Assembly: GCF_000143415.4 (NCBI RefSeq)
Contig: NW_003314278.1
Span: 2,252,408 to 2,316,407 of the forward strand
Origin: Selaginella moellendorffii
Taxonomy: Eukaryota; Plantae; Lycopodiophyta
Direction of reading: 5' to 3'
DNA: 64,000 nucleotides
How positions within the stretch are numbered: the first letter of the stretch is position 1; every line of letters starts with the position of its first letter. The position numbers and the translations under genes were made by a program. Below the pieces are notes generated by a model. The model made no database searches. It saw nothing but the letters and a program-made list of their open reading frames with translations, and was not told the origin of the DNA. Below, piece by piece: positions 363-9,179 of this stretch.

Positions 363-950
363 CTATATACAATGTCAGTATAATAAATATCAAGAAACTA
401 CACACCCGCGTTCTTTCGCTTTTCTCTAGCATGCAATGTAAATAGCATACCTTCTGCGACACTAATAACCCTTTCTAATGTGTTTATACCGACCACATAA
501 CTATGAACGGGTTGCTGAATCATGCTCTATCGAAAGCAGAATTCATCTGCCAAAACCGAAAAGGTACTTAGTACCTGTTGAAATGTATGCATATGCATGG
601 TAACTTCAGCACCTAGAGATGGAATAATTCTTACCTTCGAGAAAATGGAAGCGAGAGAATCGCTAGAACAACCTTGACAACCTTTTCAGGAATTCCACTG
701 AAATTAAACATGTCAATAAGGGAAGCAACAAGCAATTTAGCTCAATACCTTTTTTTCTCATCTAGCGCTTTCACTTCGGATTTCTTCGTGGCGTCCGATT
801 CAACCCTGCAGAAGAGGCTATTTAGTAGCTGTTGAAAAATGTGTTTACATTTTGACCACTGCCCATACGCGCAAAACAAACTTACCGGACTTTGCTTTTG
901 CTACAAATATACGAACAAGCAACCACAACATGGAGTTTAAGTTTCGCGCA

Positions 951-3369
951 TTACTTCTCGTCAAAATCATAAATGCAAGATCCATTGTCACTCCTTGCGG
1001 TTGGGTCATAGTTCGCTGCATTGGGATCCGCGCACCCTTCAGGCACTGGAATGTTAACCTGTTGTGCGGCCTTTCCTGAATCAATAATACACAGAGGTCC
1101 AGCAGAGGATAAGAACAAACAAGTAGTTACCGTAAATGTTGGATTTATCGGCGACGGAAATTTTGGGTTTAGAAGCTTCAGCAGAAAAGTCATATTCGCA
1201 AGTTCCATCATCGCTTCTTGCAGTCGGATCGAAATTAGCAGCATTGGGATCGGTACAGCCCTCAGGAACTGGAAGATTGATTTGCTGTGCAGCTTTTCCT
1301 GAAAAAAAAATGGTTAACAATCTCTCAGGTGTTTTAGAAAACGTACCATATAAATTATCTTTTTCAGCTTTTTGACCTTCGGAAAAATCATAAACACAAG
1401 TTCCATCATCGCTTCTTGCCGTTGGATCGAAGTTTATAGCATTGGAATCCGTACATCCCTCCGGCACTGGAAGATTAATCTGTTGTGCAGCCTTGCCTGG
1501 TAGAAATGTTCAAGCAAGCAAATAAAAGAAAAACGCACGAGCTTAAATGCTTACCATACAAATTGTCTTGTTTCAAAGAACTCGTTGCGGGAGTTTTCTC
1601 AGCAAAATCATATTCACAAGTTCCGTCATCACTTCTGGCCGTAGGATCGAAGTTTCTTGCGAAGGGATCAGCGCAGCCTTCTGGAACTGGAAGCTTGACC
1701 GCTTGGGCAGCTTTGCCTGCAGTTAAAATGTTCCTCTAAGAAAAGAGAAAGAACGGCGAGTTTTTCTTTTTTACCGTAGAAGGTATCCTTCTCCCTTTCA
1801 TCCTCATTTGCATCACCCAAGGAACTCCCCTTCATATACTTATCAGCCAGATGATATCGCTTCACATTCTCCTGCTCTTGAACAAGCATATTTCCATATT
1901 CGAGTAGCTTGTCAATCGTCATGGGAGGCTTTGGAAAAGTCGGGGGACCATCCTTAGAGTTGACCAGCTTCGGGCCTATATTTTCCACCCCAACCTGGGT
2001 AATCCACTTTCTAACCTCGTCATCGTAGACTCGGGCCCTCAGAGCACCAAAGAAGTCTGTTTCACTTCACGTTAGTCACAAAAGAATGCAATGCCTATAA
2101 CAGTACTCTTCTTACCTATAGATTGTCCTGGAAAGGTGTCCACAAGTTTAACGATGTCCTCATCAGGTACGTCGTCAGTTCTGAAAATGCCTTTACAAAC
2201 GCCAATCCTGTCCTCCCTCGTAGGCGCCCAGTAGAACTTCTCCATGCGACCGTCACGGATCAAAGGTGCATACAAAGTCGAGAAATCGTTTCCAGTCACA
2301 ATGATCGGAACTCGGGGTAACTCCTCCTTGGTGTAAATTCCAGGCAGTTGGACGTTGGTTGGATTGTCCGCGATGTTCATCAGTGTTGCATTTACCATCT
2401 GGTTGTTGACGGTGTACTGCGTAGTCCCTCCCATTCTTCCAGCACCGGCATCCAGGTCGTTGATAAACAAGACGCACATTTGGCCTTTCTTCTTGATAAT
2501 ATCAGCTGCTTCCCGATATCTCTGTCGGATTAGCTTTGCAGGTTCTCCAGCATTACCGCTCTCGAGCTCTCCAGCGCTCATTGCAATGGGACTGGGGTAT
2601 AGTCACAGAAAACCCAATCAGTTATAGAGTCATCTCGCTTTTACCACCTTACTTGATTCCTAGTTTGGAAAACACCAATTCGCACTGAAATGATTTTCCT
2701 TGTCCTTTGCCTCCCCAAACACCGAGGATAAGAGGAACCTGGAAATGGTTTTCCAATTAGCAAGCAAGCCAGCAGACCATTGGAAGCTACTCCCACCTTA
2801 ATATTCGGAAGAGCCATGAAATTCTTGGAAATGTGAATGACGAGCTTGTCCATGAACGCTGGAGCGATGTATAACCCATCGATGGTGTTATCCATAGAGT
2901 AGCTGAAAATTCCAGTCTAAGATGGAAAAATCCGAGCGAAAGAGAAGAACAAAGAAAGAAACTTACACGCGCTGAGCGGTGTTGAGGTACTCGAGACTCG
3001 ACATAACGGCAGTCTGCGTTCCTCCTCCTTGAGGGCCTTGATACAACGAATCCACCATCCCCTTTCCTCTCGTAATATCCTGCTGATCATCCGACGTATC
3101 GGTCCCCAGGCCTTGCCATCGATCGGTTTTGCTCTGGGAGGATTCATCCACTTGGCAGACTACACGACCTTTAGCCCGGAAATTCCCCGCGCGAGCACTA
3201 AAATCATGCTGATGCACGACGCTGCCATGAAATGCCGATGAGAGTGGCGATCTTGCGCCGATTGGATGCGCGGATGCCTGAATTCCATGGAAATTTCGTC
3301 AGTGCGTAGAGATTTCTAGAGAATGATAGCGCAAGTTACCTGCACTAGGAGCTGCATTGACGCTGCCAT
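951..3369 (-). CDS. RCA: Rubisco activase (AAA+), alpha-type, with four tandem C-terminal extension exons
   Basis: Motifs [93 protein letters not shown] at 3369. CTE exons at 1555-1716, 1347-1496, 1131-1298 and 951-1075, all with GT-AG introns. Confidence 0.97.
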
Positions 3370-3448
3370 TGCTTGATCGAGGAGCCCAGCTCGGCTTACA
3401 AACAGAGTGTTGCCCTACGGATTATTCGTTCTCAACGGCTACAGTCGT

Positions 3449-3500
3449 GCCACGTATGAGGGGCTTATCCCAAGGGAAAGCACTAGAATGCGCCACGTGG
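3449..3500. promoter_or_regulatory. Light-responsive G-box/I-box module in the RCA/LPA3 divergent promoter
   Basis: GCCACGTA 3449-3456, CTTATC (reverse GATAAG I-box) 3464-3469 and GCCACGTGG 3492-3500, within the ~190 bp between the divergent ATGs. Confidence 0.6.
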
Positions 3501-3560
3501 ACGGATTTTTATCCCATGTTTTCCCTCCAAAATTTCAAGGCTTAGGGTTCTAATGTTTTA

Positions 3561-5359
3561 ATGGCGATGGCTTTGGCCTGCCGCTTTCCTTCTTGGCTCG
3601 TAGCTCCGCGCTGTTGCTCGCCATGGAATCGATCTGGATTCTCCTCTTTTTCGCTTTCGCTGCATCCTTCCATTGGCAGCGATTGCATTTCCAGAATTTT
3701 GCGCTTGAACAGGAACTGTGAGCGGTGGAGGAATCGCGCAGCTGTGGACGCAGCGAGCGGATACGATCCACGGGACGGGGTCGCGGTGTACAAGCCGGCG
3801 TCCTATGACGTTCTTGTGAATGGTGAGTTGTTTCGATGAAGAAGAAATTGTTTTACCAAGCTCTGAATTTACAGATGCCGTGGATGCGACATTTTTCGCT
3901 CTCGATGAGGGAAACAATAGACTGGAGATTGAATTCCCGTAAGTGTTTTGTTCTTCCAATTATACGATTGAGAGATAGATTTTTCCATCCAGGCCGCTGC
4001 CAAACGAAATTTCCAGCTACAAGGTATGTTGGATCATTTGAAGGGGTTTCCAAAGAAGAAAAAAAGAGGCAGACAAAGAGAAGAATAAAAAGATTTCTGG
4101 CTAACAACAATGTTTCGCAGGGATCATCAGATGACTTTATCGACGCAAATATACAGCTAGCTTTGGCTTTTGCGAACAAGCTAAACGCAGCGAGAGGCAT
4201 CGTTACCAAGATAGTAAGGTCGCGTTCTGTGCTCGTGCGTTTTCTAAAGTGGAGTCTATTTATCTAGGTGTTTCCAGATAACGTGGAGAAGAGAAGAGCT
4301 TCCAGGGTTTTTCGATCAGCTTTTGATCTCGTAAGCAACTTTTATATGTTGCCAGACTAGAGCATATTTTTGTGTGCTACTCAGAGTAAAGGGATAAGCC
4401 TCGGCTGCCTGGATGATGTTCCAGGAGGCAATGGCTTTCTAAAAGCATTAAGAGGCGCGTTCGAGCTGGACTTTCAAGAAGATGTGTCGGGAAAATGGCA
4501 AACTTCTTCTCCTCCGTCTATGTATGTCGTGGTGAATTGTAGCGGCAATGAGCTCCCGGATCTTCAGAAGTATATGGTGAGGGCTGTGCTTCTGGTTTTA
4601 TGCGCAACTTCCTTCACGGTTTTCTATGCAATGCAGGATGCCGTCGTGGGAAGTGCTTCTATAGTTTTGTTCAACTTACAGCTAGATAAGTTAAGGTACG
4701 AGAAATGTTTAAAACGTTGAGAACTTCCGTGCTAAGGACCGCGACAGGTCAGATCTTGGCCTGTTTGGATTTCCAGGCAAGGACTTGCAGTACGAGTTTC
4801 TGTCGCAGTTCCTCCCCGCCTTCTACATTCGCACCAGAGATTACTCCAAGGTAAAGTAATGTTCTCTCGAAAATCTAATGATGGTAAGAAGATAACGCTC
4901 ACAGAACGTGCCTTTTGCACCTTTCATCGTTAATTACAGTGGAGCACTACTGAGACGTTATCCTGGTATGCCATCGCTCTTAATCTTGTGTTTGCCACAT
5001 TAAGGCTTGGTTTTGTTTGACTCAGGACCATGGCAAGTCATGATTAAACAAGCGAATGGTGTATATGCTTGCGTAGCTGAGAACAGACAGCGGTTTACGC
5101 TAGGACAAGTATTGCCTCTAACGTACATAGCATTCGTCTGATCTGGATAAATCGTGCAGGCCAAAGAAGAACTTTTGCGATCTCTTGGACTCCAAGAAAA
5201 AGAAGGCAGCAACCTAGAGTTCTTGCGTAGAGGTTACAAGGTAAGCCTAGTAGTTGCTTAAACGAAACACTAGAAAAGCTTTCCTTTCGTGTCAATTAGA
5301 CGTCGACATGGTGGGAGGATGATGCAGCTCTCGAGAAATCATCGGCATGGAGAAGCTAG
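3561..5359 (+). CDS. LPA3: LOW PSII ACCUMULATION 3-like (DUF1995), multi-exon chloroplast protein
   Basis: Exons translate [93 protein letters not shown]...SAWRS*. Confidence 0.88.
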
Positions 5360-7685: not shown

Positions 7686-9179
7686 ATGGGCGAGGAGAAA
7701 TCCAAATCGGGGCCGCCTGGCGCGGCGCTGTGCGGGAGATGCCACGTCTCGGAGGAGCTGGAGCTGCAGGCCAGGAGCATGATCCTTGGTGGCTCTGGTG
7801 GCGGCGGCGACGCCGTGCCTCCTCCTCTGTGCAATAGCCACAACAAGCATTGCTGCTGCAAGCTAGGCCGGCACACCCCAACGCACACGCTCACGTATGA
7901 CGCGGAGCTCATCGCCCTCGACCCCTTCAGCAGATCCAAGAAGATCCGGCGCGGCGCCAATGGCCGATTCGTTCCCAGCGACGCGAAGATCCAGCACCCC
8001 GGCGGCGGCGGCGGCGGCGGCGGCGGCACCAATTCGGAGCTTACGTCAACGGTAGTTGCCATGGAAGTTGACAGCGGCGGCAATTGGCTCGAGAGCGACG
8101 GCGGCGCTGGTGGCGGAGGAGAATTGGCGGACAGCTCGCTCATCCCGGGGCTCGGGGACGACGTGGCGCGCCTCTGCCTCGCCCGGCTGCCCAGATCCTG
8201 CTACGGCCAGTTCTACACGGTAAGCAAGAGATTTTGCTCGCTACTTAGGAGCGGGGAGCTGTATAGCACGCGCCGCGGCCTGGGCATCTCGGAGCAATGG
8301 GTCTATCTTCTCAACAGCGGCCAATCCGTGTGGCGGGCCTTCTGCCTGGTCGATGGCGGGCGATGGCGGCCGCTCCCGCCCACGCCCTCGGATCCATGCT
8401 TCAATATGTGCGACAAGGAGTCGCTCACCGCAGGGACGCAGCTGCTCGTGGTCGGGCGCGAGATCAATGGCCACTGCATCTGGGGCTACGATCTCCTCAC
8501 CGATCGCTGGTTCCGAGCTCCACAGATGAACACCCGGCGCTGCCTCTACGCCTCGGCCAGCTGCGGCACCCACGCGTTTGTCGCGGGGGGGATCGACTCC
8601 ACCACCCAGCTCGAGCTCCGCGCCGCCGAGCGCTACGACTCGTCGTCCGGGCGGTGGGAGGCGCTGCCGGACATGATCAAGCCGCGGAAGATGTGCTCGG
8701 GGTTCTACATGGATGGCAAGTTCTACGTGATCGGTGGCGCCAACGCCGCCAGCGCGGAGCTCACTTGCGGCGAGGAGTTTGATCCCGACGCCGGGACGTG
8801 GAGGGAGATCCCCGGGATGTGTCCTGCCAGGAGCGATACGACGAGCAACTCGCCGCCGCTGGTGGCGGTGGTGGACAACCAGCTCTTCAGCTTGGATGCG
8901 TCGTCCAGGAAGCTCAAGCGGTACTGCAAGCGATCGAACTCGTGGAGGGTGATCGGCGATGTTCCTGTCAAGGCGGACTCGAGCAGTGGGTGGGGGATGG
9001 CGTTCAAGGCCGTGGATGGGCAGCTGCTCTTGATAGGCGGCGATCGGAGGGACGGAGACGCGATCTATGCGTGGAAGCCGTGCGAGGAGGAGGGCGGCGC
9101 CGCTGTAAATTGGAGGTTCATTGCCGGATTGGTACCACCGGGGACGTTCGTCTTCAACTGCGCGGTCATGTCCGCGTGA
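7686..9179 (+). CDS. F-box/kelch-repeat protein (SKIP11-like), single exon
   Basis: F-box LIPGLGDDVARLCLARLPR, DKESL.AGTQLLVVG, kelch repeats, RKMCSGFYMDGKFYVIGG, C-terminal FVFNCAVM. Confidence 0.93.
   Translation: MGEEKSKSGPPGAALCGRCHVSEELELQARSMILGGSGGGGDAVPPPLCNSHNKHCCCKLGRHTPTHTLTYDAELIALDPFSRSKKIRRGANGRFVPSDAKIQHPGGGGGGGGGTNSELTSTVVAMEVDSGGNWLESDGGAGGGGELADSSLIPGLGDDVARLCLARLPRSCYGQFYTVSKRFCSLLRSGELYSTRRGLGISEQWVYLLNSGQSVWRAFCLVDGGRWRPLPPTPSDPCFNMCDKESLTAGTQLLVVGREINGHCIWGYDLLTDRWFRAPQMNTRRCLYASASCGTHAFVAGGIDSTTQLELRAAERYDSSSGRWEALPDMIKPRKMCSGFYMDGKFYVIGGANAASAELTCGEEFDPDAGTWREIPGMCPARSDTTSNSPPLVAVVDNQLFSLDASSRKLKRYCKRSNSWRVIGDVPVKADSSSGWGMAFKAVDGQLLLIGGDRRDGDAIYAWKPCEEEGGAAVNWRFIAGLVPPGTFVFNCAVMSA

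Follow-up and report, generated by a model that had tools for sequence, protein, structure and literature searches.

The single C-terminal extension (CTE) of alpha-type Rubisco activase (RCA) is the textbook link of photosynthetic electron transport, through thioredoxin and ATP/ADP, to Rubisco activation; how the CTE docks on the RCA hexamer is still unsettled, and its necessity is debated. In the alpha-RCA of Arabidopsis and spinach, the CTE carries two cysteines that form a disulfide in the dark and are reduced by thioredoxin f, and the oxidised CTE makes the enzyme more sensitive to ADP (PMC12596110; PMC9951593). The single redox-active CTE goes back to Zhang and Portis 1999, as cited in both of these papers. 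Here, we describe an RCA gene of the lycophyte Selaginella moellendorffii in which the CTE is present four times. The gene lies in a stretch of 64,000 nucleotides (nt), hereafter the window, which corresponds to scaffold GL377582.1 (GCA_000143415.2) with 0 mismatches over 19,179 bases; the locus L001 on this scaffold is the window shifted by 2315 bases.

The gene is the expressed RCA1 of S. moellendorffii, an alpha-type RCA. It is located on the minus strand (3369-951) and comprises ten exons with an open reading frame (ORF) of 1896 nt encoding 631 amino acids (aa), and all nine of its introns are GT-AG introns of 48-64 nt. A preliminary description, made from the letters of the window, had named the gene as a Rubisco activase, and the domain content bears this out: the Pfam domain AAA was detected in exon 5 (E 4e-12), and RuBisCO_activase_AAA_helical (PF21228) in exon 6 (E 1.2e-23) and at the end of exon 5 (E 2.8e-9). 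Exons 1-6 together encode a transit-peptide-like N-terminus, the N domain, the AAA+ core with Walker A (GGKGQGKS, residue 158) and Walker B (LFINDLD, residue 219), and the helical subdomain, and their final residues are ...KDTFY-G.

The last four exons encode one complete alpha-type CTE each (modules 1-4). The hallmark of alpha-RCA, a two-cysteine extension after ...FYG (PVPEGC...DPTARSDDG(T/S)C), is present four times. The four modules share a core of 38 residues that can be aligned gaplessly, and 25 of the 38 positions are invariant, including both cysteines of each copy. Every copy carries the CTE signature, that is, KAAQQxNxPVPEGC, 18 residues, and CxYDF, and the eight cysteine codons were verified one by one. 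The linkers, 12-18 residues long, each end in (L/I)YG and restore the ...FYG junction found before module 1. Introns 6-9, which bound the modules, are all of the GT-AG type and in phase 1. On re-joining of the exons, the exon coordinates, the lengths divisible by three (162, 150, and 168 nt), the phase-1 GT-AG introns, and the linker ends of the preliminary description proved exact. Its claim that all eight cysteines are kept also stood at every codon, with saturated synonymous sites and unalignable linkers, and the residues past module 1 add 17.4 kDa, in agreement with the predicted surplus of ~17 kDa over the usual alpha form.

Public RNA data showed that the modules are parts of one transcript. 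The sampled words of window 900-3400 were present at 24-63% in 20 public runs (at least half of them in 15 of the 20), a share that fits a content of spliced RNA. RNA contigs of four runs from four studies were mapped to window 700-3500, and in these contigs all nine RCA introns were found as clean GT..AG skips. In each run, one contig passed through the joints 2056/1774, 1715/1554, 1495/1346, and 1297/1130 and on to 954, which places modules 1-4 on one assembled RNA. Thus, the expectation that the gene product contains all four modules was confirmed at the RNA level, since the four exons are transcribed and spliced in, contiguously, in contigs from four studies. No beta-type (CTE-less) transcript of the gene was found in the contigs of the four runs, where intron 6 was seen in its spliced form only; rare forms can escape contigs.

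An alternative splicing event, which the preliminary description had not noted, was observed after module 4, where two 5' splice sites share one acceptor. The donor at 955 removes the stop codon TAA 953-951 and keeps the frame (joint 804-954 in contigs X1, X8, and X16 of three runs), and the donor at 886 keeps the stop (joint 804-885 in contig X11 of the fourth run). By this choice, the protein either ends in ...YDFDEK or gains a charged-then-hydrophobic tail. The end of the gene at position 951, as initially described, is therefore valid for the isoform made with the 886 donor; in the contigs of three runs, the 955 donor is used and the stop is removed. The product of the first bridging exon (805-749) is charged, and that of the second (697-635) is hydrophobic (GIPEKVVKVVLAILSLPFSR; Kyte-Doolittle mean of up to 1.75 over 15 residues). 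In all four runs, contigs proceed from 749 into the exon at 697, their loose-end letters matching the exon start. Inclusion of a further candidate exon, 574-451, would stop the RCA frame at TAA 570-568 and give a tail ending in ...SRRY. The precursor of the 631-aa form has a calculated mass of ~69 kDa, to which the tail would add roughly 4-5 kDa; a fusion with the downstream cyclophilin would reach ~100 kDa, and removal of the transit peptide would make each mature form smaller. The coordinates are collected in Table 1.

Table 1. Exons, introns, and splice sites of the RCA locus and associated features, in positions of the window.
Feature	Position	Strand	Characteristics
RCA exons 1-6	3369-3340, 3277-2967, 2902-2797, 2738-2653, 2591-2116, 2056-1775	minus	Defined by translation, Pfam, RNA-contig junctions
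Module 1 exon	1716-1555	minus	162 nt, phase 1-1; CTE core and linker ending DNLY-G; Cys codons 1675-1673, 1618-1616
Module 2 exon	1496-1347	minus	150 nt, phase 1-1; Cys codons 1455-1453, 1398-1396
Module 3 exon	1298-1131	minus	168 nt, phase 1-1; Cys codons 1257-1255, 1200-1198
Module 4 exon	1075-951	minus	Cys codons 1034-1032, 977-975; TAA 953-951 used only when the exon continues to the 886 donor
Introns bounding the modules	1774-1717 (58 nt), 1554-1497 (58 nt), 1346-1299 (48 nt, divisible by 3), 1130-1076 (55 nt)	minus	Phase 1, GT-AG
Alternative 5' splice sites	955 (AA/GTAATG), 886 (CG/GTAAGT)	minus	69 nt apart, same phase; common acceptor 806/805
Bridging exon	805-749	minus	57 nt; no open frame other than that of RCA (VESDATKKSEVKALDEKK-); covered by contigs of all four runs
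Bridging exon	697-635	minus	63 nt; no open frame other than that of RCA; strong donor AAG/GTAAGA
Candidate exon	574-451	minus	Good splice sites, flanking introns of 60 nt and 88 nt; predicted by sequence reading
Large cyclophilin exon (start)	362-1, continuing to L001:1943 past the window	minus	Tat-like lumen signal (GKRSFVAQ...AFA), then CYP26-2-type PPIase domain
Single-exon Kelch gene	7686-9176		Within the window

Comparison of the modules with one another revealed nucleotide identities of 69-82% between the cores. The proportion of synonymous differences between modules (pS) was 0.59-0.96, at or near saturation, and the nonsynonymous distance (dN) was 0.05-0.18. The dN/dS ratio, a check suggested in the preliminary description, was ≤0.13 wherever it was computable, which points to purifying selection on all copies. 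Neither the module introns nor the linkers could be aligned with one another, and Tandem Repeats Finder reported no repeat in window 850-1850. As the repeat is undetectable at the DNA level, the duplication is neither recent nor made by the assembly. The allelic differences in the RNA contigs followed the same pattern: all five located within module cores were synonymous, and the single non-synonymous site was found in a linker. Both the RCA-specific lead KAAQQxNxPVPE and the YDF ending belong to the stretch that every copy conserves. Judged from these comparisons, the modules are old tandem duplicates of one symmetric phase 1-1 exon, each kept by purifying selection, and the symmetric-exon structure shows the CTE behaving as a mobile module.

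The Selaginella gene resembles the alpha-RCA of Arabidopsis and spinach in the AAA+ core, the helical subdomain, the ...FYG/KAAQQ... junction, the C-x18-C signature, and the position of the intron before the CTE; however, those enzymes have one CTE, whereas Selaginella has four, each in an exon of its own and joined by the linkers described above. The splice choice is also reminiscent of the alpha/beta switch of angiosperms, as in both cases paired 5' splice sites are used and the retained segment carries a stop codon. In Selaginella, however, the alternative site lies after the last CTE and not before the first, as it would for an alpha/beta pair, so no CTE-less beta form results. Scanning of metagenome contigs with RCA-specific patterns yielded 38 plant-type RCA loci representing 15 distinct sequences. 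In each of the 38 loci, a stop follows 0-5 codons after the one and only module, and the downstream flanks available, of up to 3 kb, contained no second module. Among the 15 distinct sequences were an Arabidopsis-type one and moss-like ones ending in ...CVYDFK, ...CVYDFKF, and ...CVYDFKNL; the latter share the YDF ending with the Selaginella modules but have one module instead of four. Single CTEs of other plants were 68-83% identical to the Selaginella modules, and in protein searches with fragments, all alpha-RCA C-termini returned had a single module.

Two protein fragments whose ORF continued past the CTE (P0179 and P0194) were considered as candidates for additional modules and rejected: neither has a second module, one stops under the standard code, and the other enters non-coding sequence. 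Fragment P0179 (L002, ENA metagenome contig k141_815892) is a plant-like single-module RCA fragment, the database protein of which reads through the stop after ...YDFKEEK. Since L002 does not translate to P0179 under the standard code, the source of the k141_815892 protein apparently used another genetic code. The plant RCA C-terminal fragments P0187 and P0188 are filed under bacterial names (Alteromonas sp. and Leptospira interrogans), which looks like plant contamination of bacterial assemblies.

A profile search with the four modules, which brought out a resemblance that the preliminary description had not noted, matched 12,213 proteins, among which RCA proteins ranked below the best 150. 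The best 150 of these matches were proteins of 409-6618 aa with 9-74 matching stretches each; their repeat unit reads GCTDPxAxNYDPxAxxDDGSCxY, with the C-x18-C spacing in 1737 of the 1756 units. At least one examined carrier of the repeat has a type IX secretion system (T9SS) sorting domain, and no model of Pfam or NCBIfam covers the unit. When a profile was built from 1500 repeat units without RCA, each module scored 34-40 bits against a maximum of 9.4 in 2000 shuffles, the repeats themselves having been found via the RCA profile. The mixed alignment of RCA modules and bacterial repeats contained no gaps and kept G, C, A, N, A, G, and C throughout, and AlphaFold2 predicted a compact module core (pLDDT, the per-residue confidence, of ~90 over residues 11-30). 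With these results, the alpha-RCA extension resembles a single unit of a widely distributed disulfide-loop repeat to which an RCA-specific lead has been added, which would fit the behaviour of the CTE as a duplicable exon-sized module. The alignable stretch is only ~23 residues, too short to tell descent from convergence. The cysteine spacing is identical in the two groups; however, the bacterial units stand head to tail, with a period of ~24-27 residues, in giant extracellular surface proteins, and lack the RCA-specific KAAQQxNxPVPE lead, the YDF flank, and the TARSD core. The match to a common unnamed C-x18-C repeat offers a testable idea on the origin of the CTE at the time when it appeared in streptophytes.

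The only relative in the PDB by sequence and fold was residues 332-353 of perforin-2/MPEG1 (6u2j, 6u23), a truncated EGF-like hinge. Both matches are weak (E 0.033 by sequence; E ~1 by Foldseek, with 27-30 columns, 43-48% identity, root-mean-square deviation of 2.1-2.3 A), and the hinge is one copy in an animal pore-forming protein for which no redox role is described (PMC6989145). The closest non-plant match seen was a probably bacterial protein (L043 and L044, ~3001-3072) with 75% identity to module 1 over 24 residues, in which a single module stands right after a signal-peptide-like N-terminus (...AAAQW/).

How the four modules may act can be considered by extension from the single CTE. We give about an even chance to the reading that the gene encodes an expressed alpha-type RCA with its CTE multiplied to four and that the extra copies provide multivalent redox control of ADP sensitivity. 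Each module would be a self-contained loop: when oxidised, it would be closed by a Cys-x18-Cys disulfide of its own, and thioredoxin would open it in the light, as with the one CTE in the alpha-RCA of Arabidopsis and spinach. With four such tethered loops on each subunit, or 24 on a hexamer, autoinhibition would be multivalent, and in the dark the enzyme would be more sensitive to ADP or bind ATP less well. Several disulfides would have to be reduced for full activation, so that the redox response might become steeper or graded. The multi-disulfide redox rheostat put forward in the preliminary description is plausible. If every copy were selected to make one and the same RCA-specific contact, conservation of KAAQQxNxPVPE and YDF in all of them would be expected, and these flanks favour a redox autoinhibitor over a pure spacer. 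CP12 and the C-terminal extension of GAPDH subunit B are short, flexible chloroplast regulators that switch Calvin-cycle enzymes by means of thioredoxin-controlled disulfide loops. CP12 has two cysteine pairs per chain; neither regulator is known to be related in sequence to the RCA modules, the target is a different one, and there are two loops rather than four.

Several points weigh against multivalent redox control. In most contigs, the protein continues past module 4, so in that isoform module 4 is not a free C-terminus. The bacterial version of the module forms long extracellular arrays, in which the disulfide is presumably structural and not regulatory. In addition, CTE-based redox control is not universal, as Rubisco activity was unaffected when soybean alpha-RCA was reduced (PMC9951593). 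A natural enzyme with four conserved copies offers a dose series in which it can be asked whether CTE number sets the steepness or midpoint of redox and ADP control, and whether a CTE acts in cis or on neighbouring subunits.

An alternative, which we regard as possible but clearly less probable than redox control, arises from the cyclophilin exon downstream: RCA, the four CTEs, and a CYP26-2-type cyclophilin may be made as one precursor, in which the modules would serve as an internal linker and not as a C-terminal regulatory tail. GenBank annotates one gene (L001:1711-5684, 961 aa) with the AAA, RuBisCO_activase_AAA_helical, and Pro_isomerase domains, which supports this alternative; however, the model is an automatic prediction, and its exact length was not reproduced. 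Enumeration of splice chains for 961 aa gave 247 solutions, and the RNA-guided chain gave 950 aa. That chain, through the junctions 955/805, 749/697, and 635/362, is open for 950 aa to the cyclophilin stop (L001:1713-1711), which also speaks for a fusion, as do two further facts: neither bridging exon is open in any frame but that of RCA, and all junctions are in phase 2. The acceptor 363/362 is strong and requires an incoming phase of 2, which is what the 635 donor supplies. Only the first two junctions were seen in RNA (955/805 in contigs of three runs and 749/697 in contigs of four). The third lies below 700, outside the mapping range of the RNA contigs, and would require an intron of 272 nt, in contrast to 48-64 nt for the other introns of the gene. 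The candidate exon 574-451, with its consensus sites and introns of 60 and 88 nt, would close the frame before the cyclophilin is reached. Moreover, contigs can merge adjacent transcripts; for example, a 3745-nt contig probably runs on into the convergent lipase gene, because its length exceeds that of RCA and the cyclophilin together.

The cyclophilin exon itself bears on the question from both sides. It matched Pro_isomerase in Pfam (E 3e-17) and is 44-63% identical to separate CYP26-2-like proteins of 264-381 aa from bryophytes, ferns, and seed plants; the best matches were bryophyte and fern proteins of 264-353 aa and angiosperm proteins named CYP26-2. Elsewhere in plants, the orthologues stand alone and each has a transit peptide, which argues against a fusion; the Tat-like signal of the Selaginella exon is in the position equivalent to theirs, whereas the spliced exons of Selaginella give the cyclophilin neither a start codon nor a transit peptide of its own. 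In favour of a fusion, none of the spliced exons offers an in-frame ATG to the cyclophilin, and the only clean independent start, ATG 711, lies inside intron 748-698. Similarly, the protein collection, which includes bryophyte orthologues of 298-353 aa, contained no separate Selaginella cyclophilin of 134-427 aa, although such a protein could hide in the 90% cluster of the fusion. We also know of no precedent for a lumen-targeting signal behind a 670-residue stromal enzyme, which counts against the fusion. Taken together, the production of a real RCA-cyclophilin fusion protein appears doubtful. About as doubtful is the scheme in which one transcription unit with one transit peptide yields stromal RCA and lumenal CYP26-2 from an RCA-CTEx4-CYP26-2 precursor of ~950 aa, the four loops being a hinge or processing region. 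If true, this would be a natural polyprotein joining Rubisco activation to protein folding in the lumen, and the stop-removing splice, if a protein results from it, would provide an unusual stromal and lumenal pair from one precursor. A fusion would be compatible with the explanation of the modules as a redox tail for the other, stop-keeping isoform.

We consider it unlikely that the extra modules are disulfide-stapled spacer or binding units, or simply tolerated length, and not redox regulators of the ATPase. As such units, they might keep the hydrophobic tail off the hexamer or bind another partner, such as Rubisco, the surface of the thylakoids, or, as a decoy, thioredoxin. Consistent with this, secreted proteins carry the repeat in arrays of 10-70 units, T9SS sorting domains being present in some of them, a single copy lies within the truncated EGF-like hinge of perforin-2, and the dominant contigs go beyond module 4 into the tail. 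However, the conservation exceeds the C-x18-C core, as the RCA-specific KAAQQxNxPVPE and YDF flanks are kept in all four modules and are absent from the bacterial repeats, and the low dN/dS (≤0.13) argues against mere tolerated length.

Even less probable, in our view, is that alternative splicing adjusts the module number and yields a ladder of isoforms with 0-4 modules, as the preliminary description had proposed. The frame effects it listed are correct and would permit such a ladder: the module exons are symmetric (3n, phase 1-1), retention of the 48-nt intron 8 keeps the frame open, retention of intron 9 gives a stop within the intron, and retention of intron 7 causes a frameshift with a stop 21 codons on; a retained intron 6 also yields an early stop. 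RefSeq isoforms up to X5 are, moreover, listed for the S. moellendorffii RCA1 loci (PMC9951593). Nevertheless, the joints of the module region in the four runs were the four constitutive ones only, and the sole alternative event lies downstream of module 4. No joint indicating module skipping or intron retention, and hence none of the predicted isoforms with 1-3 modules, was found in the RNA contigs of the four runs, which is a weak negative result because contigs suppress minor forms. Finally, an assembly artefact or untranscribed pseudo-exons can be dismissed, given the spliced contigs from four studies that hold all four modules in order, the difference between the cores at 18-31% of nucleotides, the unalignable introns and linkers, and the null result of Tandem Repeats Finder.

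A search of the accessible literature found no paper on a multi-CTE RCA, an RCA-cyclophilin fusion, the stop-removing splice, or a link between the CTE and the C-x18-C repeat. The four-exon structure is already implicit in public gene models, namely the GenBank model of 961 aa and the RefSeq isoforms up to X5 (PMC9951593).

In the surroundings of RCA, a DUF1995 gene is divergent, the cyclophilin follows head-to-tail, and a convergent GDSL lipase gene lies beyond it. The start codons of RCA and the DUF1995 gene are ~190 bp apart and divergent (window 3369-3561). One RNA contig extends beyond 3377 with letters that differ from the genome, and this departure suggests a spliced exon in the 5' untranslated region of RCA.

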